Part shown: positions 746 to 20,076 of the stretch, piece after piece | Position numbering within the stretch: the first letter of the stretch is position 1 | Layout: every line of letters starts with the position of its first letter | Source of the DNA: Prasinococcaceae sp. CCMP 1430 | Lineage: Eukaryota > Plantae > Prasinodermophyta | NCBI GenBank assembly: GCA_013416795.1 | Contig: RQSC01001371.1 | Location: 47,746 to 67,821, forward strand | Direction: 5' to 3' | Length of the DNA: 20,076 nucleotides | The notes under the pieces: generated by a model | Told to the model about the DNA's origin: nothing | What the model saw: the letters and a program-made list of their open reading frames with translations, nothing else | The model's database searches: none | Program-made: the position numbers and the translations under genes

Positions 746-2284
746 CTACTTGGCGAGCCCCCAGATGCCCTTCATCGCGAAGAGGTCGTCGTCCAGCTCG
801 CGCATGACCTTCTTCTGGCCCTCGAGCAGCGGCTTGACGGAGTCGCGCTGGTCGCCCATGGTGGTGATGTACATGAGGATGAGGTCGATCGAGCTGAGCA
901 TGGCGATCTGGCCCACGATGCGCCCGGGGTGGGGGATCTTCAGCTTGCGCACCTGCTCCCAGAAGAAGAGCGCGCCGGGGATGTACTGGTAGAAGAAGTA
1001 GGGGTCCGAGCCCAGGTAGCGGCGGTAGGTCGAGGTCATGAGGGACGCCGAGGCGGCGAAGCCCGTGATCGCCGCCGCGCGCGGGATGCGGCGCGCCTGG
1101 TACCAGCCCAGCGCGCGCTCCACGCCGTCGGGGCCCACCTTGGCGAGCTCGTCCGCCAGCGCCGCGGCGTCCTCGATCGCCTGGCAGCCGCCCTGGCCCA
1201 TGTTGGGCTGCATGGCGTGCGCCGCGTCGCCGAGCAGCGCCACCCGCCCCTTGCACCACTGCAGCGTGGGCGGCCTGTCGTAGATGTCGCGGCGCTCCAC
1301 CTCCTCGCTCACCACCGCCTCCAGCCGCTCCCTGACCGCCGGGCACCAGTCCGCGAACGCCTCGAGCAGCGCCGCCTTGCGGTCGGCGCCCTCGTCGTCC
1401 ATGCCGGCGTCCTGCTTCACGAAGGCGTACCACTGCTGCTGCCCGCCGCCCACGTCCGACGACACGAAGTACTGGCCCGCCCCCAGGAACACCATGTAGC
1501 CCACCGTGTCGACGTCCGCGGGGGTCATCCGCGAGATGGCGGCGTAGCACGTGTAGCCCGAGTAGGTGGGCGCGTCGGGCGCGTCGCCCACCATCTTGTC
1601 GAGGTTCTTCTCGAGCGGGGGCGCGTCCATCATCTGCGAGCGGCAGCGGCTGCGGATGCCGTCGGCGGCGACCAGCACGTCGCACTCGTCGGTGGCGCCG
1701 TCGGAGAGGTGCACGCGCACGCGGCCGCCCGGCAGCTCCTCGTACCGCATGACCTCCACGCCCTGGCGCAGCGCGCCGGGGGCGACGCGCGCCGTCATCT
1801 TCTCGATGACGTCGTAGCGGTTCATCACCACGGTCAGCGGCAGGCCGCTCTCCAGCGCGGGCTTGCGGCAGTCGAAGCGCACGAACCAGTCGCCGTCCTT
1901 GCCGTCGAGGAGGCCGTTGAGGCGGTCGCCGGTCACCGTGCCGTCGCCGACGATCGCCGCGGCGGCCGACGGGTCGCAGATGTCCAGCGCGGCCATCGCG
2001 TTGCCCGCCATCTGGATGGGGCCGCCCCAGGGCTTGTACTCGCGCACGCGCTCGTAGCACGTCACGTCGAGGTTCTTCGTCTGGCACGCGAGCGTGGTCG
2101 CCAGCCCGGCGATGCCGCCGCCGGCGACGATGACCTTGGGCGTGGAGGTTGTGGCGGCCGAGGCCTGCATGCGCGCGGCCGAGGCGCGGCGGGGGGCGAG
2201 GCGGCGGGCCGTCGACGAGCTCCGGGAGGAGGCGGCCGTCGGGGAAGAGGACAAGGCGGCGGGGCGCGCGCGCTCCATCATCAT
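746..2284 (-). CDS. ZEP: Zeaxanthin epoxidase-like FAD monooxygenase, intronless, with N-terminal plastid transit-like peptide and no FHA domain
   Basis: First ATG of MMMERARP at 2284. Ser/Ala/Arg-rich leader, then VIVAGGGIAGL (GxGxxG), GGPIQ, GDRLNGLLDG, LVAADGIRS, YSGYTCY, LLGDAAHAMQPNMGQGGCQAIED, all typical of ZEP/ABA1. 512 aa. Confidence 0.85.
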   Translation of the reverse strand: MMMERARPAALSSSPTAASSRSSSTARRLAPRRASAARMQASAATTSTPKVIVAGGGIAGLATTLACQTKNLDVTCYERVREYKPWGGPIQMAGNAMAALDICDPSAAAAIVGDGTVTGDRLNGLLDGKDGDWFVRFDCRKPALESGLPLTVVMNRYDVIEKMTARVAPGALRQGVEVMRYEELPGGRVRVHLSDGATDECDVLVAADGIRSRCRSQMMDAPPLEKNLDKMVGDAPDAPTYSGYTCYAAISRMTPADVDTVGYMVFLGAGQYFVSSDVGGGQQQWYAFVKQDAGMDDEGADRKAALLEAFADWCPAVRERLEAVVSEEVERRDIYDRPPTLQWCKGRVALLGDAAHAMQPNMGQGGCQAIEDAAALADELAKVGPDGVERALGWYQARRIPRAAAITGFAASASLMTSTYRRYLGSDPYFFYQYIPGALFFWEQVRKLKIPHPGRIVGQIAMLSSIDLILMYITTMGDQRDSVKPLLEGQKKVMRELDDDLFAMKGIWGLAK

Positions 2285-2773
2285 GGCGTTGTTTGTCGTC
2301 TTTCTTCCGACGACCGAGGAGGGGGACGGGCGGAGCGCGCCGTGCGCCCTCTCGCCGCGCGCGCTGTGGCGGGCGAGAGGGCGGCGCGGNGACCCGCCCG
2401 CCACGAGCTAATGACGCTGTCCTGTAATAATAAGCGCGCCCCGGCGACGCCTGTGCGAGCACCCGCGCGGGCTCGCGCGCCCCTCAGGCCTGCGCACCGA
2501 CGACGGGGCTCCGTCGCATGCGCGCATGCAGTCGCGATGATCTCATACATGTTCGTATTACGCGCCCTCCGCAAGCGCAAGGGCGTAGCAGTAGTAGTGT
2601 GGTAACGCGAGTGCGGGGGTTGCTCTGCACGCGCTGCGCTGCTGCGTGACGGCGGGCTGGAGAGGCGCGCGTGGTTGCGGTTTCGTTTTGATTTTTTGGG
2701 GAGAGCCGGTGTGTGCTTGGTAGGGTTCGTGGAAAGGGCGTCGGATCCGGGCGCGAGGACGTGCGCATGTGAT

Positions 2774-2836
2774 TTGATATGCGTGTTTTGGAAGGCTCCT
2801 CGCGGTGAGCTTTTCGGGCGTTTCGCATATGATTGA
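2774..2836 (+). repeat. 63-bp hairpin element, copy 1 (partner 5236-5298)
   Basis: 57/63 identical to 5236-5298 with an identical 30-nt core GAAGGCTCCTCGCGGTGAGCTTTTCGGGCG. GAAGGCTC pairs with GAGCTTTT(C) using G-U pairs on the + strand. Both copies have TGAT at the 5' end and TGATTGA at the 3' end. Confidence 0.8.
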
Positions 2837-3299
2837 TCGCCTTTCGGCCCACACCGCGTCGGGGCCAAGTGAGTCGATTCCTACGGCCGTCCATTCGAAC
2901 ACGTCGAAGAGCGCGCTGTCGCCCGGCGCACCGCCGGCGCCCGCCATGACGGGGGATGATGCAAAAATCTGCACGGACACTGGCAGGGACTGATCTCGGA
3001 TCGGATGGGACAAACCCATAAAATGATTGATATGGCGGGCACGACGCTTATCTTTGCTGTCCGGGGCCGTCTTGTGGCCGTTGTCGCTTTACGAGTTGCA
3101 CGACTGCACGACTCTGTACCGGCACGGCGCGGTCGCCAACCAACGCTTCATGCGCACGCTCGAACGAGGCCGCTGGCTTGGCCAAGGAGTTGTCCGCAAC
3201 TTGGTAGTGAAAGCGGCGGGGCAAGCCGGACAAGAAGCAGTAGTTCATGGAGGGAGTCTGCGCGCACGTGAAGAGGTCGGGCGTTCCGCGAGTCACCAC

Positions 3300-3639
3300 T
3301 TGCGTCGTCACCTCCGCGGCGCCGACATCTTACGCATGCTTGATTGCCACCATGATTTTTGGAGGTTAACTGATCACGAGCGCCGGCGCTAGACCGGCGC
3401 CGCCGCGCACTCTCCGCCCAGTAGCCTCATCACAGTAATGTAATCTCCAGATTTGGCCTGGACGCGACATTCTCTCTCCATAGCTCAGTTGGCCAGACTT
3501 GTCGGCAGACCCGTTTCGACATAGAGCGGATCCGGCAATCTTACAAAAGATTGCTCAGCTCACAGGATTGTAGTTTGATCTGAATTTCCTTAGGCCCTCG
3601 GTTCGAATTCAATTTCGAAAATCCGGGTGGGGAGAGTTG
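3300..3639 (+). repeat. 340-bp direct duplication, copy 1, containing tRNA-Tyr (partner 5697-6036)
   Basis: Constant offset of 2397. Identical except two substitutions (3324/5721, 3374/5771) and the 55-bp block 3375-3429. Confidence 0.95.
3474..3635 (+). tRNA. tRNA-Tyr(GUA) with four introns: 3494-3522 (20/21), 3530-3563 (27/28), 3574-3585 (37/38), 3608-3621 (59/60)
   Basis: Removing the 29+34+12+14 nt gives a 73-nt cloverleaf: CTCTCCA TA GCTC AGTTGGCA GAGC G GAGGA TTGTAGT TCCTT AGGCC CTCGG TTCGAAT CCGGG TGGGGAG A. All four stems pair (WC or G-U), anticodon GTA, C1-G72 and A73 as expected for eukaryotic Tyr identity. Confidence 0.9.
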
Positions 3640-4108
3640 TTTAAGTAAAAAACGACGTCTTAACTCTACGTAAGACTGGTTCTGCGCTCTTAAATACGGA
3701 GTTGAAAAGCACCACCGAGCATGTCACCACCCATTCATTTTCTTCCGCTGTATGCGCCCACCACCCTTTCCCCCTTTTTCTCCCCTTTTTCTCCTTTTTT
3801 GGCCAACCCACGCACATCCAGCGCACACCAGGTGGTGAAAGGAAAGGCGCTGGTGCGCCATCGCAGTGCAGCGCGTGCGCGCGCGCGCCCCCTCATGGCT
3901 CGTGCTGCGCGCCGCCCCCCCCCCGGGTGGGCGGCGGCGCTGAACTCGGCAGCCGAGGCGAGAGCGCGCCGCGGCGGCGCGCACCCTTACAAGTCACCCT
4001 CGCACTCCAATCCCCCCTCACCCATCGCAACACACCCCCCACGTCCCGCGCAGCCAGCCAGCCAGCAAGCGACGTACGCGGAGCGAGTTCACAGATTTGT
4101 TACGCGCG

Positions 4109-4139
<31 letters not shown>

Positions 4140-4214
4140 GGGGGGGGGGGGGGGGGGTTGCATCCGCCGCTCCTCCTCCGCTCCTCCATCCCACCCGTCC
4201 TCGGCAGGCCATCG

Positions 4215-4767
4215 TCACCGGACCTTCTTCTTCGCCTCGCCGTTCACCCGCCCGTTCGGCGCTCCCCTCCGCCCCTTCCCCTCCTTCCTCCTCCCCTTCT
4301 CCTTCCCCCCTTTGTCCTCGATGGTGAAGAACCGCACCCCCAGCGCGTCCGCAATCCTGCTGGCGGTGTTCCACGTGCGCCGCGCGTACATGGCCACCGA
4401 CAGCGCGCACATGGCCTCGTGCACGCGCGTGACCGCCACCGCCCCGTACCCCGCCGCGCCCAGCGCGGCGGGGGCGGCCGCGAACGCCGCCAGCATGAGC
4501 AGCGCCCAGTGCAGCGACGGGTACGGGATGTACCCCACGCGCGTGACCATCAGCCGGTTGAGCACGTCGCCGAAGGTCACGTGCGCCAGCACGTACAGCG
4601 CGATGAGCGAGTTGCGCGCGAGTCCCACCTCGCGCGCGGGCTCGACCGCGCCCCCGAACGCGCCCCCCATCGCGCGCCGCAGCGCCGCGCCCACCCCGCC
4701 CAGGCCGCCGCCGGACGGGGCGCGTGTGCCGCGCGCGGGCGCGCGCGTGCGGCGCCGGCGACGACGC
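4215..4767 (-). CDS. C-terminal exon of a choline/ethanolamine phosphotransferase (AAPT/CEPT family); orphan in this orientation
   Basis: Acceptor CAGCCAG|G at 4769/4768. Hydrophobic helices; VTFGDVLNRLMVTRV and RIADALGVRFFTI resemble the AAPT C-terminal motifs (FGFLVGRMILAHL; ITEALGIYCFRI). TGA at 4217-4215. Confidence 0.7.
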
Positions 4768-5696: not shown

Positions 5697-6036
5697 TTGC
5701 GTCGTCACCTCCGCGGCGCCAACATCTTACGCATGCTTGATTGCCACCATGATTTTTGGAGGTTAACTGACGTGCTCGCGGCCGCGATCTGGCCGCGGCG
5801 GCGCGTGAGAGGCGGGTCATCGGAGTTCACAGTAATGTAATCTCCAGATTTGGCCTGGACGCGACATTCTCTCTCCATAGCTCAGTTGGCCAGACTTGTC
5901 GGCAGACCCGTTTCGACATAGAGCGGATCCGGCAATCTTACAAAAGATTGCTCAGCTCACAGGATTGTAGTTTGATCTGAATTTCCTTAGGCCCTCGGTT
6001 CGAATTCAATTTCGAAAATCCGGGTGGGGAGAGTTG
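5697..6036 (+). repeat. 340-bp direct duplication, copy 2, containing tRNA-Tyr
   Basis: Aligned by eye to 3300-3639 without gaps. Confidence 0.95.
5871..6032 (+). tRNA. tRNA-Tyr(GUA) with four introns, identical second copy (introns 5891-5919, 5927-5960, 5971-5982, 6005-6018)
   Basis: All 162 nt are identical to 3474-3635. Confidence 0.9.
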
Positions 6037-6043
6037 AAATTCA

Positions 6044-6049
6044 TTTTTT
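6044..6049 (+). terminator. Pol III oligo(dT) terminator of tRNA-Tyr copy 2
   Basis: T6 run starting 12 nt after A73. Confidence 0.65.
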
Positions 6050-6394
6050 GCTGCAGAATTGAGATGCATTCTGACCAAGACGCGAGAATTTACGTAATAG
6101 GTGCACCAGACTTGATCGGTATTTTACGGGATTTGAATTAAGTGCGTTCCAGAGAATGAGTCGAACCCACGCCCGGCTCTCCCGTGGGCAGGTCGCGCCC
6201 TTCTGTGCGCACCCCGCCGGAGTTAGGGTGCAGGATCTCGATGGCAGGGAGCACGGGTTTGCGGCAGGCGACGAACCCTCTTGCGGCGGGAACAGAAAAA
6301 TATACCCTTACTCGCGCCCGCCTGGCCGCACCCTCACTCGGCCGACCCCGCCGCCTCCCCCCCGGCCCAGCCCACACACACACAGCAGCCCGCT

Positions 6395-8027
6395 CTACGC
6401 CTCCTGCACGAAGGCCTTCTCGCCCTTCGCCTCGACGTACTCGGACTCCTTGGCGGCCTTCTTGGCGAACTTGGCCTCGAAGGCCTGCCGGTTGGCGACG
6501 ATGCGCGCGATGAGCGAGGTGAGCGTGAAGGGGCGCATCGCCCTCTCGGTCGCCGACAGCCCCTCGCCCTTGACCACCGCGCGCACGTTGATGTGCGCCG
6601 CCGAGTCCCCCCCCAGCCTGTGGCCGCTCATGTTTCTGTAGATCATCTTGTTGACCTGCTGGATGCCGTTGGCGACGTTGCCCGCGAAGGCGCCCAGGTT
6701 CTCCATGCTCTTGGACTTCGCGCGGCCCCGCGGGGGCCACCTCCGTCCCCTCCCCCCATCCTTGGCCTTGGCCTCCGCCTCCGCCCGCGCCGCGAGCGCG
6801 GTCGCCTCCGCCTCCGCCTCCCACGTGCTGCTCCGGTCCTGCAGCATGCCCATCTCGCGCGGCACGGCGTACGCCACGCGGTCCGACTCCTCGTCCAGCT
6901 CGTCCAGGTCGTCGCGCAGCACGAGGCTGATGTTGAAGGTGTTTATCAGGTCGGTGGTCATCACGCGCGGCGCGCCGATGACCACCTCGTCCACGTGGCA
7001 GCACGCGAGCACCGACAGCGCGCGCTCGTGCACGTTGAGGATGGGGAAGTGCGGCCCGCGCTCCGCCATCACCACCTCGTCGGGCCAGACGCCCACCAGC
7101 AGGAAGTCGCCGCGCGCCTTCGCCTCGCGGAGCAGCGTGATGTGGCCCGGGTGGAAGACGTCGAACGAGCCGTCCACGTAGACCACGCGCGAGTTGGGCC
7201 TGATCTTCTTGGACGAGGAGAACTGCACGATGCGGCGCGAGGTGGGCATGAAGCTCGACGCGCGCCCCTCCACCTTCTCGTCCTGCGTGAACTCGCGCTG
7301 CAGCGGCGACAGCTCGCCCATCTCGGCGTCGAGCGAGGCCTTCCGGAGGGACGGCTTGCGCTTGGTGCACATGAGCATGCGGCCCACGATGTCGGTGGTG
7401 GACACGCCCTCCGTGCGCTTGATCTCCTTGTACTTGCCGCGGCGCTTGGCGTTGGCGTAGGCGTCCTTGCCGTCGGCGGTGTAGCAGGGGTCGTCGCCGT
7501 GCACGATGTAGTCGATGCGGTGCTCGGTGAACAGGTGGTTCATCAGGTCGTCGGTGACGTCGTACGGCACGCCCATGATCACCTCGTCCACCCACTTGAC
7601 CGCCTCCACCGCCATGCGCCTCTCCCCCTCGTTGAACACCGGCGGGCCCTTGTGCACCTTGATCTCCTCGTCGGGCACCAGGCCGATGATGAGCTCGTCG
7701 CCGAGCGTCGCCGCCTGGCGCAGCGCGTTGGCGTGGCCGTAGTGCATCATGTCGAAGCAGCCGTCCATGTACACGCGGATCTTGTTTGTTTGTGTGGGTG
7801 GGCAGGTGTGTGGGTGGGCGAGAGGGCGATGAAGGGTGCGAGCGTGCAAGAGGAATCCGATCGAGCGGGCGCAGTCAGTTGGTTGGGCGAGGGCAACTCG
7901 TTGGGCGGGCGCAGCGGCGGGGGCGCGGCGGCTCCAGTGCGGCTCCGCGCGCCGATCGGCGCAGCGCCACCGCGAGCGCGGGCGCGAGCGCGGGCGGAGG
8001 CAGCACCACCACCGCCGCGAGCACCGC
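6395..8027 (-). CDS. PECT1: Ethanolamine-phosphate cytidylyltransferase, 5'-incomplete; main exon 7780-6395, putative upstream exon 8027-7971
   Basis: IRVYMDGCFDMMHYGHANALRQA, RTEGVSTTDIVGRML, and a second domain VYVDGSFDVFHPGH: two HxGH cytidylyltransferase domains. Acceptor after a CA-rich tract (AACAAG|ATC). The upstream exon AVLAAVVVLPPPALAPALA is phase-compatible but tentative. The first exon is lost at N8126. Confidence 0.9.
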
Positions 8028-8095
8028 CTGGCGACGAACGCGCCGTGTGTGCGCGTGTGAACGGCCGGCCTGTCAGCGCCGCGAGAGTGCCATCG

Positions 8096-8125
8096 CGTGT
8101 GTATGTGTGTGTGTGTGTGTGTGTG
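8096..8125. repeat. (GT)n microsatellite ending at assembly N
   Basis: Near-perfect GT run directly before N8126. Confidence 0.8.
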
Positions 8126-8127
8126 NG

Positions 8128-8544
8128 GGCACGGTGCCGTTTGGCATGGGCATCTCGGCGCTGGCCGCGCGCGTCATGTCTGGAGGGAGCGGCGCAGGCA
8201 CGCTGTACGTGTGGGGGGAAGGCATGGGAGTGGGATCGCTGACCCAGGTTGGCGTCGGTGCCGCCGAAGCTACGGGCGACGGGGACACTGGACTCTCGTG
8301 CGCGGCCTCGGCGGACACAAACGCGGAAGATGCGCTTTCGCCTGCGCTCGTGTTGGGCGCATTCGACCTTGACGTGTACGCTATTTCGTGCGGCAACAAG
8401 CACATGGCCGCTCTGTCGAACAACGGAGCAGTGTACACGTGGGGCGCAGCTGGTCAGGGTGCGCTGGGCCACGGCGAGCGCGCGATTCGGGCCCAACCAA
8501 ATCCCGGCCGGCCGAAGCGCATTCGTTTGCGCGCATGGGCGTAA
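8128..8544 (+). CDS. Fragment of an RCC1-repeat protein
   Basis: GTLYVWGEG and VYAISCGNKHMAALSNNGAVYTWGAAGQGALGHG match the RCC1 consensus (ixCGxxHxxaLxxxGxVYxWGxxxxGxLG). 5' end cut at N8126; 3' end uncertain (GTAAG may be a donor). Confidence 0.7.
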   Translation, partial: GTVPFGMGISALAARVMSGGSGAGTLYVWGEGMGVGSLTQVGVGAAEATGDGDTGLSCAASADTNAEDALSPALVLGAFDLDVYAISCGNKHMAALSNNGAVYTWGAAGQGALGHGERAIRAQPNPGRPKRIRLRAWA

Positions 8545-8967
8545 GTGAGACCGGCGCGCGCGCGCGCGCGATCGGCAGTTCTGGATTCGATCCTGGGTTC
8601 GCGCGAACCCAGACGGCGCGCGCGGCGCGCCCCCTGCGTGGTACACGCCCCAGCGGCGGCGGATCGAATGCGACGCGAATGCGCGATCGAATTCGCGATG
8701 GAATTCGCTATCGAATTCAATTCGCGTTCCGTTCCCGGACTTTTTTGTGCTCGCGCGACAAGGCGGCGCCTGTTTGCAACAATTCCGAAAATTGCGCCTG
8801 GGCGAGCGCGTTTTTAAAAACCAAACCACCAGCGCAGGCGGCGCGCGGCGGCTGCGTCGTCCGTCGGTCTGTCGGGCGGCGCGGCACACGGCGCGCGGCG
8901 GCGCACGGCGCGCGGACGCCCGCGCAGAGGGCGGGCGGGAGGGTTTCGAGAAAGCCGGCCGGGCGCC

Positions 8968-9764
8968 ATGCGCTTCCTGGGCGGCAGCACGGCGGCGACC
9001 GAGGGCACGGAGGAGTTCGCCGCGGCGTGCCGCGCGTACAAGTACGTCGGGCCCAACCTGTCGCTGCTCGAGCGCAACGGCCTCGAGCGGCTGTGGGCGG
9101 CGCTGCCGGGCAACGTGTACCCGCCGTGGCTCGCGCCCAACGTGGTCTCGCTGATGGGCGGCGGCGCGATGATGGCGGCGACGACGCTCATGTGGCTGTA
9201 CTCGCCCGACCTCGACGGCGCGGCCCCCATCTGGGTGTACGTCGCGCAGGCGGCGCTCATCTTCGCGTACCAGACGCTCGACGGCTCCGACGGCAAGCAG
9301 GCGCGCGCGACGGGCTCGGGCTCGGGCCTCGGCGAGATGGTCGACCACGGCATCGACGCGCTGGTGACGGCGTCGGCGGCGTGCGTGGTGATGGACGCGG
9401 GCTCCTTCGGCCTCGCCAACATGCACACGTGGGCCATCCTCGGCGCGCTGCAGGTCGTCTTCTTCGTCTCCAACATGACGCTGCTGCACACGGGCAAGCA
9501 GCTCATCAACGACATCGACGTGATCGAGCTGCACTGGGCGGGCATCGCCACCCTGCTGGGCACCGCCTTCGTGCCCGGCGGCACCGCGGCGTGGCGGCGG
9601 CCCATGGCCCCCTTCCTGGCGGCGGAGCGCCTGCCCGCGTGGATGTCGGACACGCTGCCCTACATGGCGGAGGACGGCGGCGTGTCCACGCGGCTCTTCC
9701 TCGCGTGCGGCTGCTGCGTGGGCATCGTGGCCAACCTGGCCTTCTACATGTACACGGTGTACAG
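8968..9764 (+). CDS. N-terminal exon of a choline/ethanolamine phosphotransferase (CDP-alcohol phosphotransferase)
   Basis: YKY, PPWLAPNVVSL and the catalytic motif YQTLDGSDGKQARATGSGSGLGEMVDHGID (DxxDGxxARxxxxxxxxGxxxDxxxD). Phase-2 donor TAC AG|GTGGGT at 9765; the intron runs into N9903. Confidence 0.9.
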
Positions 9765-9904
9765 GTGGGTGCGGTGCGACTGACTGTGTGTGTGTGCCCG
9801 CCCTCCCTCCCTCTGCGCGCGCGCGCGCCGAAGTCGCCGCCCGCCTCGGCCGACGGCGCGCTGACTGACGCGCGCGCGCCCGCCGCGCGCGCGCGCGCGC
9901 GCNC

Positions 9905-11899
9905 GACGATGCGTTGGATGATGGCAAGAAGGACAAAAGGCGGGGCGGCGGCGGGCGAGGCGGGGCGGGCGGCAGGGGGGGTGGCGGTGGTGGCGGTGGA
10001 GCGCCTCGGCCCGGTCGCACGCCGGAGGGAAGCGGGCGCCTACACGAGTATTCCGAGGGCGTGAAGGTTGCCGGTCATTTCTCGCAGTGGTCGGAGTTCA
10101 GCCAGATGCCCATGGCGACTGTGACCGCCGTGCTGGGGCGCGTGGGATCGCTCGAGGCGGAGACGGCGGCAATCTTGCACGAGTTCAACGTGCCGTCAAA
10201 TGAGTTTCCTCCGGAGGTCTTTGAGGACCTGCCGCAGGGCGAGGCGCTCACAAACGTTAACCTGAGTGCGCCCGGCGGCGCACTCGACGCGCCGCGCCGT
10301 GACCTGCGCGAGTGGCGCATCACTTCGATCGACCCGCCCACCGCGCGCGACCTCGACGACGCGTTGTCCATCCGCGAGCTGCCCAATGGCCGCACCGAGG
10401 TAGGTGTGCACATCGCCGACGTCACGCACTATGTTGTTCCCGGCACCTCGCTCGATGCGGAGGCCGCTGAGCGCTCGACCTCCACGTACCTCATCGACGG
10501 CGTCATTCCGATGCTGCCGCGCCCGCTCTGCGAGCATCTGTGCTCGCTGCAGCCGGGCGTGGACCGCCTGGCGTTCTCGATAACGTGGGAGTTCGACAAG
10601 CAGGGCAACATTCACAACGAGTGGGCCGGCCGCTCCATCATACGCTCGTGCGGCCAGCTCGCGTACCAGAATGCCTACAACCTCATGCAGGGGCTGCCGC
10701 CGGACGAGGGCGACATCAAGCTGCCGGAGCTTCACAACGGGGTCACGTGGAACGACGTGGCCCACGACGTCAAAGCGCTGTGGCGGATCGGCTCGCAGCT
10801 GCGCAGGAAGCGCTTCGCCGACGGCGCGCTCGCCCTCCATCGGGTGAAGTTCGGCTTCAAGCTTGACGAGACGGGCCAGCCCACGGCGGCACACCACTAC
10901 AAAACCAACGAGGCGAACCAGCTGGTGGAGGAGTTCATGCTGCTCGCAAATAGGTCCGTGGCGCGCATTATCGCGGAGGAGTTCCCCGACCGCGCGCTTC
11001 TGCGCCGCCACCCACCGCCCGACAAGAAGAAGCTCGGTGATCTGGCGTCCTTCGCGGCCAAGCACGGCCTTAGCGTCGATACGCGTACCTCAAAGTCGCT
11101 GCACGAGAGCTTGCAGAAGGCGCGGCAGACGTACCGTGACCAGGGGCTTGCGGACGTGCTCGTGCACTTCGCCACCAAGCCCATGCAGCTCGCGATGTAC
11201 TTCAGCTGTGGCATGGCCATCGAGGCGGACTGGCCACACTACGCGCTCGCCATGGAGCGCTACACGCACTTCACCAGTCCCATCCGGCGCTACGCGGATG
11301 TGGTTGTGCACAGGATGCTAGCCGCAGCACTCGACATTCGCGCGGGTGCTGTGGAGGACCACGAGGCCGCCATCGCTAAGTGGCAGCTCTATGAGTGCGA
11401 GGACGCCGACCGGCAAGCCTCGCGCTGCAACGAGCGCAAGGAGGCTGCCAAAATGGCGCAAGAGGCCTCCGAGCGCCTCTATCTGTGCCTGCTCTTGAAT
11501 GCCGGCAAGGAAGGCGACCCGCGCGTTGCGAGGGTCGGCGAGGGTGGCGTCAACCGCTACACCGACGGGCTGATCGTCTCTGTTGGCTCGAAGTTCATCT
11601 CCGTCTTCCTGCCGCACTACTCCATCGAGAGCAGGTGTTACCTGGATGACATCCACCCCGACCTGCAAGCTGCGCACGACCCTGACAAGTTCACGGTTAC
11701 GCTCACCGGAGGGCCGGCAGGCGGCGGGCGAACACTGCGCATTCTCGACCACTGTACCGTGGAGCTTCACGCGGTCTTTCCCAATCGCGGTCCGTGCCAG
11801 ATTCGCACCACGCTTCTCGTTGGGGAGGGGGAAGAGCCGCCCGACACGCGCCACCACTTGCCCGCGGTGGCAGCCGCGCACGCATCGGAGGACGTGTGA
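9905..11899 (+). CDS. DIS3L2-like RNB-family 3'-5' exoribonuclease, 5'-incomplete
   Basis: RRDLR...SIDPPTARDLDD, VGVHIADV, LCSLQPGVDRLAFS, VEEFMLLAN, HYALA..YTHFTSPIRRYADVVVHR. No introns seen. Confidence 0.85.
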   Translation, partial: DDALDDGKKDKRRGGGGRGGAGGRGGGGGGGGAPRPGRTPEGSGRLHEYSEGVKVAGHFSQWSEFSQMPMATVTAVLGRVGSLEAETAAILHEFNVPSNEFPPEVFEDLPQGEALTNVNLSAPGGALDAPRRDLREWRITSIDPPTARDLDDALSIRELPNGRTEVGVHIADVTHYVVPGTSLDAEAAERSTSTYLIDGVIPMLPRPLCEHLCSLQPGVDRLAFSITWEFDKQGNIHNEWAGRSIIRSCGQLAYQNAYNLMQGLPPDEGDIKLPELHNGVTWNDVAHDVKALWRIGSQLRRKRFADGALALHRVKFGFKLDETGQPTAAHHYKTNEANQLVEEFMLLANRSVARIIAEEFPDRALLRRHPPPDKKKLGDLASFAAKHGLSVDTRTSKSLHESLQKARQTYRDQGLADVLVHFATKPMQLAMYFSCGMAIEADWPHYALAMERYTHFTSPIRRYADVVVHRMLAAALDIRAGAVEDHEAAIAKWQLYECEDADRQASRCNERKEAAKMAQEASERLYLCLLLNAGKEGDPRVARVGEGGVNRYTDGLIVSVGSKFISVFLPHYSIESRCYLDDIHPDLQAAHDPDKFTVTLTGGPAGGGRTLRILDHCTVELHAVFPNRGPCQIRTTLLVGEGEEPPDTRHHLPAVAAAHASEDV

Positions 11900-12053
11900 A
11901 TAGGCCACCTCTCAAGCGCGCAACGACCAGGACGGCCACCAGTGGTGTTTTAATGACTTCTCACTTTGCTAATACAGTACGTGTGGTCGCGTTTGGTCTC
12001 CTGGGGTGCGCGCACCCAGGTTGCTCTCATCTCACAGTGCGCAGCGCTACAGC

Positions 12054-13169
12054 TCACTCGAAGTACTCGTTGGTGAAGATCGCCTCCGCGCGCACTTGAT
12101 CTCTGGGGATGCGCTCGCCCACGTCGCCAGCTCGAAGCCCGTCCAGTGTCGCTGACTGGCCCTTGACCGGCTGCCGCGAGTTCGCGTACGTCGTGAGCAA
12201 GCCCTCTTTGTCCAGCCAGTCCAGGTACGCATTCCAGCGCTCGGGGGTCTGGCGCCCCCATTTGCCGTCGCCATCTAGGTACGCCGGCCCGAGCTTGCGC
12301 TGTGAGCGCACGCACATCTCGAGATCGAGATTGTCGTCGCCGCAGAGCTCCTTGGCGCCTTCCACGAGCTCGCGCGCTGCCTCCTCTGGATGCGCGGCCG
12401 CCCATTCGTAGCCCTCTGCAGTGGCCGCAAGGAAGGCGCGCACGTCGTCCGCGCGTGCAGTGAGCGTCTCGGGCGCCGCCACGAGGCAAGGCGCGTATGC
12501 GTACGGTATTCCGTAGTCTTCAAGCATGAAGTAGTTCAGCTTCTGATCGTCCCCACTCATCTCGGCCTGCACGCCCTCCCAGCACGTGAATACCCACGTG
12601 GCGTCGGCCTCGCCCTTGAGCACAGTGTTCCACAGGCCAAGCATGGGCTCCACACACTCCTCGTAGTCGCCTGTGCCGCCGTCGGCCTGGATGAGGCGCT
12701 GGATGATGCGTCCCTCGAAACGGGCGGCATAACTGGCGTAGCGTTTCCCGTCCAGCTCGCGCGGCCGGGTGATGTCCTTACGCGCGGCGACGGCCGAAGT
12801 GTTACGCTGGCACAGAGCGGCGACGGTAGTGAGCGTGCGCTCGCGCCGGCCGCTCGCGCCGCATGCAGGCAAGTTCCAGCCGACCACTCCCTCCGGCGAG
12901 TTCATGGCAAAGGTCACCTCTCCGGTGGATGCCAGGCCACACGGCGTGGCGTAGCCACCGCCGTCGCCGCCGCTCACGTAGCTGCCCTTGTAGCGCGCGT
13001 CTGCCGCGGAGAGCAGCTCCACGGTGAGCCCCCTCTTCGCGTACATCCCACGCCTCGCGGCGACGAAGAACCCGGTGTGGTTCGTGTTGGGCGTCCAGTC
13101 GAGCGCGACGACCACCGGCGCGCCGCCCCCTCCATCGCCGCCGCCGTTGCCGCCGCCCGCCGCGGCCAT
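12054..13169 (-). CDS. NMT1/THI5-family (ThiY-like) thiamine-precursor-binding protein
   Basis: VALDWTPNTNHTGFFVA...G, GKRYASYAARFE and DYGIPYAYAPCLVA are typical of the NMT1/ThiY periplasmic-binding fold. Intronless, 371 aa. Confidence 0.8.
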   Translation of the reverse strand: MAAAGGGNGGGDGGGGAPVVVALDWTPNTNHTGFFVAARRGMYAKRGLTVELLSAADARYKGSYVSGGDGGGYATPCGLASTGEVTFAMNSPEGVVGWNLPACGASGRRERTLTTVAALCQRNTSAVAARKDITRPRELDGKRYASYAARFEGRIIQRLIQADGGTGDYEECVEPMLGLWNTVLKGEADATWVFTCWEGVQAEMSGDDQKLNYFMLEDYGIPYAYAPCLVAAPETLTARADDVRAFLAATAEGYEWAAAHPEEAARELVEGAKELCGDDNLDLEMCVRSQRKLGPAYLDGDGKWGRQTPERWNAYLDWLDKEGLLTTYANSRQPVKGQSATLDGLRAGDVGERIPRDQVRAEAIFTNEYFE

Positions 13170-13564
13170 GATGGCACGCCCCGCACTCCGCGCCGCCGCC
13201 GCACGCGCGAGATGTGCCGCCCTCGGGGCCGCCGGCGTTGTGCGGGCGCGCCCTAGCTAGCCCTCAGACGAGTGTAACTGACGCAGTGGCCCGATCCGCT
13301 GTTAGAAAACCGCATGTGATTTGATTTGATGGGGAAAGTCTTGCAGAACTGTGGAGCACAGACGACCCAAAATCCGCAGGACGCCCTCAGCAGCATCTCG
13401 CCGCGTGGCCGCCGGCGCCAGGCGGCACCAGCAGCGACGGGTGCGTGGCCGCAGCGGCGCGGCAGGCAGCGCGTGGGAAGGCGTGGCAAGCAGTATGTAC
13501 GTATGTAACACTCTCGGAGGACGAGAAAAATGCCTAGACTAGCTAGAGCTCCGGCCGCACGCGC

Positions 13565-13922
13565 TTATGCCGCCGCCACGCGCTTCAGCGTGGCGAAATT
13601 GTCCGCGATGATCTTCGTGGACGGCGAGATGCGGTAGCCAGCACCGTTCTCCTTGGCCCACGCCTGCAGGATTGGACGCACCGTGTGGTAGTTGTACCTA
13701 GGCATCGTGGGGAACAGGTGGTGCTCGAGCTGCGTGTCCATGCCGCCCCACAGCCACGTTTCGATCGGACCGAACACAGTGTCCGCGTCACGCGTGCTGC
13801 GAAACTGCCCTTCGACAAAGTCCGGCTCATCGCCCTCCAGCATGATCTCCTCAGACTGGTGCGTCGCGGACACCAGCGCACCCACCAAGAAGCCCCCAAG
13901 GAAGATTGAGCCGATGGCCCCC
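13565..13922 (-). CDS. C-terminal fragment of a front-end-type membrane fatty acid desaturase
   Basis: WLWGGMDTQLEHHLFPTMPRY carries the Q-substituted third histidine box (QxxHH). TAA at 13567-13565. The 5' part is absent and abuts a DENN intron tail. Confidence 0.75.
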
Positions 13923-17227: not shown

Positions 17228-19697
17228 CTACTCTGCGCCACCGCACGCCCGCGCCGCCCGCAGCGCCTGCTCGGTGGCGCCGATTTTGCCGAGCGTCTCG
17301 GCCACATCCGGGTGGTCGTCGCCCAGCGCGGCGCGCTGGATGCGCAGCGCCTCCTCGAGCGGCTCGAGCGCCTCGGCGTGGCGACCCTGGATGAAGTACA
17401 CCATGCCCATGTCGCCGAGCGTCTCCGCCACATCCGGGTGGACGTCGCCAAGCTTGGCGCGCTGGATGCGCAGCGCCTCCTCGTACGCCTCGAGCGCCTC
17501 GGCGTAGCGGCCCTGGCTGTCGTACACACTGCCAATGTTGCCGAGCGTCGTCGCCACATCCAGGTGGTCGTCGCCAAGCTTGGCGCGCCTGATGCGCAGC
17601 GCCTCCTCGTACGCCTCGAGCGCCTTGGCGTAGCGTTCCTGCTTGAAGTACACCATGCCCTTGTGGTTGAGCGTCTTCGCCACATCCGGGTGATCGTCGC
17701 CCAGCTTGGCGCGCCTGATGCGCAGCGCCTCCTCGTGCGCCTCGAGCGCCTCGGCGTGGCGACCCTGGCATTGGTACACGCTGCCCATGTTGTCGAGCGT
17801 CGTCGCCACATCCGGGTGGTCGTCGCCCAGCTTGGCGCGCTGGATGCGCAGCGCCTCCTCGTGCGCCTCGAGCGCCTCGGCGTGGCGTCCCTGGCTGTTG
17901 TACACCACGCCCATGTTGTCGCGTGTCCGCGCCACATCCGGGTGGTCGTCGCCCAGCGCGGTGCGCTGGATGCGCAGCGCCTCTTCGAGCGCCTCGAGCG
18001 CCTCGGCGTAGCGACCCTGGTGGCTGCCGTACACGTTGCCCATGAGGCCGAGCGTCTCCGCCACATCCGGGTGGTCGTCGCCCAGCTTGGCGCGCCTGAT
18101 GCGCAGCGCCTCCTCGAGCGGCTCGAGCGCCTCGGCGTGGCGTCCCTGGCATTGGTACGCGGCGCCAACGTAGGTGAGCGTCATCGCCACATCCGGGTGG
18201 TCGTCGCCCAGCTTGGCGCGCCTGATGCGCAGCGCCTCCTCGTACGTCTCGAGCGCCTCGGCGTGGCGACCCTGGCATTGGTACGTGACGCCAACAGAGG
18301 TGAGCGTCGTCGCCTCATCCAGGTGGTCATCGCCCAGCTTGGCGCGCTGGATGCGCAGTGCTTCCTCGTACGTCTCGAGCGCCTCGGCGTGGCGACCCTG
18401 GCATTGGTACGCGCTGCCCATGTCGCCGAGCGTCGTCGCCACATCCAGGTGGTCGTCGCCAAGCTTGGCGCGCCTGATGCGCAGCGCCTCCTCGTACGCC
18501 TCGAGCGCCTTGGCGTACCGATCCTGCATGAAGTACACCATGCCCTTGTGGTTGAGCGTCCGCGCCACATCCGGGTGGTCGTTGCCCAGCTTGGCGCGCC
18601 TGATGCGCAGCGCCTCCTCGAGCGGCTCAAGCGCCTCGGCGTGGCGACCCTGGCATTGGTACGCGCTGCCAATGTTGCCGAGCGTCGTCGCCACATCCAG
18701 GTGGTCATCGCCCAGCTTGACGCGCCTGATGCGCAGCGCCTCCTCGTGCGCCTCGAGCGCCTCGGCGTGGCGTCCCTGGCTTTGGTACACGTTGCCCTTG
18801 TAGTTGAGCGTCGTCGCCACATCCGGGTGGTCGTCGCCCAGCTTGGCGCGCACTACGGGCAGCGCCTCTTCGAGCGCCTCGAGCGCCTCGGCGTAGCGGC
18901 CCTGGTTGGTATACACGTGGCCCATCATGGCGCGCGTCCGCGCCACATCCGGGTGGTCGTCGCCCAGCTTGGCGCGCCTGATGCGCAGCGCCTCCTCGTA
19001 CGCCTCGAGCGCCTCGGCGTAGCGGCCCTGGCTGCCGTACACGTTGCCCATGTCGTTGCGCGTCTTCGCCACATCCGGGTGGTCGTCGCCCAGCTTGGCG
19101 CGCCTGATGCGCAGCGCCTCCTCGTACGTCTCGAGCGCCTCAGCGTAGCGTCCCTGGTTGAAGTACACAATGCCCATGAGGCCGAGCGTCGCCGCGACAT
19201 CCGGGTGGTCGTCGCCAAGCTTGGCGCGCTCGATGCGCAGTGCTTCCTCGTACGTCTCGAGCGCCTTGGCGTAGCGTTCCTGCTTGAAGTACACCATGCC
19301 CTTGTGGTTGAGCGTCTCCGCCACATCCGGGTGGTCGTCGCCCAGCTTGGCGCGCCTGATGCGCAGCGCCTCCTCGTGCGCCTCCAGCGCCTCGGCGTGG
19401 CGACCCTGGCATTGGTACGAGCGTCGTCGCCACATCCAGGTGGTCATCGCCCAGCTTGACGCGCCTGATGCGCAGCGCCTCCTCGTGCGCCTCCAGCGCC
19501 TCGGCGTGGCGACCCTGGCATTGGTACGCGGCGCCAACGCAGGTGAGCATCATCGCCACATTCGGGTGGTCGTTGCCCAGCTTGGCGCGCATGAGGCGCA
19601 GCGCCTCCTTGTACGCCTCGAGCGCCTCAGCGTAACGCCTCTGGCTAAGATGCTCGTCGCCCGTGCGCACCGCCGCCAGCGCCGCCGCGCCGCTCAT
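17228..19697 (-). CDS. Kinesin-light-chain-type TPR protein, 19 tandem 42-aa (126-bp) units, frameshifted by a 17-bp deletion at 19418/19419
   Basis: Consensus xYxxQGRYAEALEAYEEALRIRRAKLGDDHPDVAxTLxxxG. ATG at 19697 (MSGAAALAAVR). The first two units are in a different frame from the remaining 17. Confidence 0.85.
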
Positions 19698-20076
19698 CTC
19701 GCGCCCCGCCCCTCCGAGTCCACGCGGGCGGCGCGCACAGAGTGCCACCGCCTTCCTCGCCACTCTCGCTCGCTCGCTGCAGCCCCCCCCCCCCCCCCAA
19801 GGGGGACCATCCGCCGCCGCGACGGAAAAAAGACCGCCCGCTCGCCCGGAAGCGCCGCCGCGCCGCGGTTCGTGCCGTCCGTGGTTCAGGGTTTATAATT
19901 CAAACCGAAATTGCGCGAAACAGGGCCGTTGGGACCCCCGGTTCTCGCGCCGGCGCGCCCCCGAGAACGCGAATCCGGAATCGGTTTCGGAAGGGCGCGA
20001 ACGAACAAACAGCAGCGCGCGCTCGCGCGCGTGCGCGCAGCGCCCGCACGCGCCCCGCAGCGCCCGCAGCGGTCGG

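Follow-up and report, generated by a model that had tools for sequence, protein, structure and literature searches.

Complement-only 55-nt blocks at the two ends of a repeat in the Prasinococcaceae sp. CCMP 1430 assembly, very probably an error of assembly or scaffolding software

In a contig of Prasinococcaceae sp. CCMP 1430 (GenBank assembly GCA_013416795.1, contig RQSC01001371.1), one of two neighbouring copies of a repeat carries a 55-nt block that is the complement, and not the reverse complement, of the equivalent block in the other copy, which raises the question of whether this relation exists in the DNA of the alga or only in the sequence file. We have analysed the whole stretch of 20,076 nt that holds both copies (positions 47,746 to 67,821 of the contig, here called the window) and compared it with 36 contigs obtained by exact-protein look-up, comprising Tara Oceans scaffolds, single-run Logan assemblies, one MEGAHIT contig and two SPAdes contigs. 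Wherever these contigs align to the window, the identity is 95–99.7%.

The complement-only blocks and their repeat

The two copies of the repeat and the elements within them are the following, with positions counted from the first base of the window:

3300 to 3694, plus strand: putative tRNA-Tyr repeat, copy 1, within a segment that is misoriented
5697 to 6091, plus strand: putative tRNA-Tyr repeat, copy 2, read as the genuine version of both blocks
3474 to 3635 (copy 1) and 5871 to 6032 (copy 2): putative tRNA-Tyr gene
3375 to 3429: block 1 of copy 1, read as corrupted; first 55-mer of the exact common repeat
3640 to 3694: block 2 of copy 1, read as corrupted; last 55-mer of the exact common repeat

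A script comparison confirms the original prediction that the stretch 3375–3429, complemented in place with its order kept, equals 5772–5826: the agreement holds at 55/55 positions, extends at neither end, and has a chance probability of about 8e-34 at one fixed register. Using a seed search we have found a second complement-only block on the same +2397 diagonal, 3640–3694 against 6037–6091, which corresponds to the long mismatch run that directly follows position 3639 in the alignment of the copies. The raw complement match obtained here is 3640–3695 against 6037–6092, the block itself being 55 nt long, as the 56th matching position is coincidental and T3695 is the genuine base of copy 1. Both blocks sit in copy 1 (3300–3694) and both measure exactly 55 nt. 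The seed search evidenced no further non-trivial complement-only matches in the window, the remainder being homopolymer or (CG)n runs, and among the 23 possible base permutations the real matches come from the full complement alone, the 22 others yielding nothing real and a single stray match at 7782–7818. An inversion mimicking a complement was ruled out, as block 3375–3429 is not mirror-symmetric, and a mutation by inversion or template switching was rejected, as the reverse complement of the block gives no match.

The repeat measures about 395 nt (3300–3694), which is longer than the 340 bp first proposed. At the +2397 offset, 3300–3373 is identical in the two copies except for an SNP at 3324, position 3374 is T in copy 1 and C in copy 2, and 3430–3639 is identical over its 210 nt; after complementing both blocks back, the copies differ at 3324 and 3374 only and diverge from 3695 onwards. 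In respect to the putative tRNA, ARAGORN and Rfam detected no tRNA or RNA family in the window. A T6 run stands a few bases 3′ of the putative tRNA in all natural copies, a T run being expected after a tRNA as the polymerase III terminator, and in copy 1 block 2 turns this run into A6. Among the wild copies (L011, L012 and L013) the differences fall mostly within one internal stretch, at about 3610–3620, and the tRNA-like parts are kept. The original prediction had also drawn attention to a 7-bp stem with a 7-nt loop kept in both versions of block 1. This hairpin is indeed present at 3380–3400; it carries no information, since Watson-Crick stems always survive in-place complementation.

Independent contigs and the order of the window

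The copy-2 versions match more than ten independent contigs directly, among Tara Oceans scaffolds and Logan, MEGAHIT and SPAdes assemblies. The copy-2 region is matched directly by L011, L012, L013, L014, L015, L016, L017, L020, L022 and L023; block 1 of copy 2 is matched directly by L022 and by part of L011, and block 2 by eleven contigs. The copy-1 versions of both blocks have no direct match in the 36 independent contigs, and the Logan contigs from Tara runs hold the normal version only. In fact, when the whole window was complemented in place and compared with all contigs, matches were obtained at 3375–3429 and 3639–3695 only. The view that a technical signature is the most likely explanation is thus well founded, as independent assemblies show one version only.

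The orthologous copy-1 locus was identified by its unique downstream flank and found in three contigs (L011, L024 and L035). At this locus L011 has the uncomplemented sequence at both blocks, being for block 1 the sole orthologous contig, more divergent and of low coverage; L024 and L035 have the uncomplemented sequence at block 2, the only one they cover, both ending inside the putative tRNA. Once exactly 3640–3694 is complemented back, the window and the contigs L024 and L035 agree at every base across the junction, T4 run and unique flank included. Exact-pattern scans of JGI metagenomes for the unique copy-1 flank and the 5′ part of the tRNA gave no match, and exact-protein look-ups of the P. 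coloniale reference ethanolamine-phosphate cytidylyltransferase (ECT) protein and of two ORFs left of copy 1 returned no record. As to its source, L011 (ENA ERZ28548065, chicken_3 NODE_9786) is a 10-kb Prasinoderma-like contig of very low coverage from a chicken-labelled sample; either DNA of a marine alga is present there, or the label is an oddity.

The same contigs allow the order of the window to be judged. Its joins and its genes, with gene identities taken from Pfam, are:

2390, 8126, 9903 and 14250: single-N scaffold joins
2391 to 4714: inverted and misplaced segment, its true place being after 9896 in reverse orientation
746 to 2404, minus strand: FAD monooxygenase
6395 to 7849, minus strand: ECT
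8968 to 9783, plus strand: CDP-alcohol phosphatidyltransferase, 5′ part
9914 to 11899, plus strand: RNB exonuclease, C-terminal two thirds
12054 to 13169, minus strand: THI5/NMT1 protein
within 9904 to 13922: fatty-acid desaturase, C-terminal end
17228 to 19537, minus strand: TPR array

Collinearity with the independent contigs stops at or beside N2390, N9903 and N14250, and N8126 lies inside 7997–8468, a stretch matched by none of the contigs. Seven contigs (L024–L029 and L035), six of them from different samples, join 8469–9896 to the reverse complement of 4714–4158; five of the seven continue into 4119–3695, and L011 gives the same order. Because of this joining of 8469–9896 to the reverse complement of 4714–4158 in independent contigs, segment 2391–4714 is taken as inverted and misplaced in the window. 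This has consequences for the CDP-alcohol phosphatidyltransferase, whose two halves lie at 4215–4694 (minus strand) and 8968–9783 (plus strand) in the window and are adjacent, on the same strand and about 160 nt apart in the seven independent contigs. Restoring 2391–4714 makes the gene contiguous, and its split on opposite strands is a product of the misoriented segment and not biology. To judge from the same contigs, the two repeat copies are, in the real genome, inverted repeats about 5 kb apart, which flank the ECT and phosphotransferase genes.

At 4706–4714 there is a chimeric join without N, at an overlap of a few bases: on one side the 3′ exon of the phosphotransferase is cut in mid-sequence, and on the other side stands the sequence that comes after 2392 in L011.

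Origin of the blocks

After correction of the blocks, the 55-mers that occur twice span 3375–3694, which amounts to one exact run of 320 nt, and the first and the last of these 55-mers are 3375–3429 and 3640–3694, that is, exactly the two blocks; left of 3375, the exact stretches common to both copies are of 49 and 24 nt, and therefore shorter than 55. What is expected of an artefact is a constant block length equal to a plausible k, a position at the ends of a maximal exact repeat, and the lack of the variant in independent assemblies of the locus, and the results obtained evidence all three, with 55 nt found twice. The fact that the blocks fall exactly on the junction words for k=55 therefore points to assembly or scaffolding software. 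With short reads, the default k values of SPAdes and metaSPAdes go up to 55, and a pipeline based on the SPAdes graph would therefore be the first suspect. We consider it very probable that both blocks are errors written by such software and do not correspond to DNA present in the alga. There is in them no biological novelty: they are real in the file, and not in the organism. A software bug that complements without reversing, which was among the options of the original prediction, is favoured by these data, as both blocks coincide with junction words of the repeat for k=55.

The error may have arisen as follows. The two repeat copies run in opposite directions at a distance of about 5 kb and have one exact 320-nt run in common. 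A de Bruijn graph of k=55 would represent this common run as one edge between two branching 55-mer vertices, which are the overlaps with the unique neighbours. Owing to the opposite orientation of the real copies, the edge would have to be read in reverse for one of the two. We infer that in copy 1 the two terminal 55-mers were reversed without complementing, and that the interior was correctly reverse-complemented; 55-mers reversed and not complemented would read as complement-only on the other strand. The segment with copy 1 was later placed the wrong way round in a chimeric scaffold, and this misorientation gives the copies the look of direct repeats and the blocks that of in-place complements.

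A literature search for an assembler bug of the complement-without-reverse type found no description, and we know of no published account of one. There is a close likeness to the strand-handling errors of de Bruijn graphs (PMC9528984), with which the blocks have in common that their length equals k (55), that they would be the vertices bounding a collapsed repeat edge, and that the error is confined to the copy read in reverse. However, the artefacts treated in that work are unsafe unitigs and split palindromes, unlike the terminal k-mers, apparently reversed without complementing, that are seen here. The same paper provides background on canonical or conjugate k-mers and on the k-length overlaps between adjacent edges (PMC9528984).

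The finding matters as a quality-control flag for this assembly. Before an odd fusion, split gene, false stop or strange repeat from this genome is given a meaning, it should be compared with independent contigs. For other assemblies from the same pipeline, a simple screen is to look for complement-only matches whose length is k and which stand where exact repeats end.

Among the other explanations, the one that survives best is an edit of the file after assembly, deliberate or accidental and unrelated to the graph, for instance intervals complemented by a script, or a test planted on purpose. We regard it as very unlikely: it agrees with the fact that no biological or sequencing process is known to yield an in-place complement, but each interval begins and ends exactly where a junction word for k=55 does, which is not expected of a post-hoc edit, and the window has independent hallmarks of a poor assembly, namely single-N joins at breakpoints and microhomology chimeras. 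A bug related to line-wrapped FASTA was ruled out, the starts of the two blocks being 265 nt apart, which is no multiple of 55.

Somewhat less probable still, and with very little in its favour, is a decoding error in SOLiD colour space, which the original prediction had placed among its options. In two-base encoding, colour errors give three in-place transformations, the full complement among them, and a difference-3 miscall complements the bases that follow until a second miscall occurs; by our reading, this would correspond to one changed colour at each block boundary. SOLiD frame errors are indeed alike in that they yield in-place base transformations, including the full complement. However, colour errors would fall at arbitrary places and with variable lengths, whereas both blocks are of a fixed length of exactly 55 nt and stand at the ends of the repeat node, as its first and last 55-mer. 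Also, no match is obtained with the two further transformations expected from colour errors, one being A<->C with G<->T and the other A<->G with C<->T.

Over and above these, the software error has to be weighed against a real event in the DNA of the sequenced cells, either a very unusual mutation, as the original prediction had allowed, or a swinger-type exchange (A<->T, C<->G). We know of no polymerase that copies in parallel orientation, and for the copy-1 versions to be physically present a 55-nt stretch would have been copied in this way two times, each time at a border of an inverted repeat, which we hold to be next to impossible; if true, copy-1 versions in the sequenced DNA would imply an unknown mutational or in-vitro amplification mechanism. 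Swinger sequences are systematic nucleotide exchanges described by Seligmann and co-workers, claimed as polymerisation products for some RNAs and GenBank entries (PMC4942731, PMC7027195), and, like the blocks, they show A<->T and C<->G swapped in register over a contiguous stretch, beside normal sequence; unlike them, the exchanged version is here missing from every independent assembly and coincides with the k-mer junctions of an assembler. A real event of either kind is extremely improbable: the relation is exact and the hairpin at 3380–3400 is preserved, but the survival of this hairpin is automatic under complementation, the T run after the putative tRNA is destroyed, the copy-1 version is missing from all independent contigs, three of which are normal at the orthologous locus, and the two blocks are of equal length and stand at graph junctions.

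Foreign pieces and further features of the window

The GC content of the window is about 70%, and most genes approach 100% G+C at their third codon positions. Translated, ECT agrees with residues 15–476 of Prasinoderma coloniale PRCOL_00000701 at 100% identity. Exon 1 of this gene is missing from the window, and it is present in the reference annotation and in wild contigs; because of this difference from the reference annotation, we take it that the source of the window is a different and poorer assembly than the sequence behind that annotation. The published P. coloniale reference is a 22-chromosome PacBio assembly (PMC7455551). At 7997–8468, where the first exon of ECT (MYRRVQRAIGLKPKK) stands in L011 and L012, the window holds an RCC1-repeat fragment (Pfam, 8128–8541), and the joins around this fragment coincide with microhomologies that are a few bases long (at about 8468, GGCGAGCG).

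A further piece, 9904–13922, comprises the C-terminal part of RNB, THI5 and the C-terminal end of the desaturase, and is 99% identical to ten Tara scaffolds. In these scaffolds the remaining parts of the RNB and desaturase genes follow, a sequence that is found nowhere in the window, where the piece is bounded by N9903 and breaks off abruptly at 13922. GC3 is about 0.85 in the piece, as compared with about 1.0 in the rest of the window, and between its THI5 and PRCOL_00002959 the identity is only 92.7%. The piece would come either from another locus, as a chimeric insertion, or from a related strain. The parts of the window unmatched by Tara scaffolds are neither complement-only nor reverse-only copies, and consist of different sequence.

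The window is a mosaic, which shows this assembly to be unreliable, and it resembles the chimeras of multiple displacement amplification (MDA) or of low-coverage short reads: its inverted and misplaced segments are joined at microhomologies of 8–9 nt or at single Ns, and genes are cut in mid-sequence. Such chimeras give reverse-complement joins, which fit the mosaic and not the complement-only blocks. That MDA was used for this assembly would be a guess on our part.

At 17300–19600 on the minus strand there is a 126-nt tandem array of about 17 TPR_12/TPR_10 repeats, kinesin-light-chain-like, with an intact ORF of 769 aa; this TPR array contains exact repeats of up to 93 nt, yet no complement-only blocks were seen in it. 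At 4109–4157 a C29 run is directly followed by a G20 run, and at the same site L011 and L024 have a short C run (7–12) and no G run; the C29/G20 run is probably another artefact. A G16 run is found at 19783–19798.
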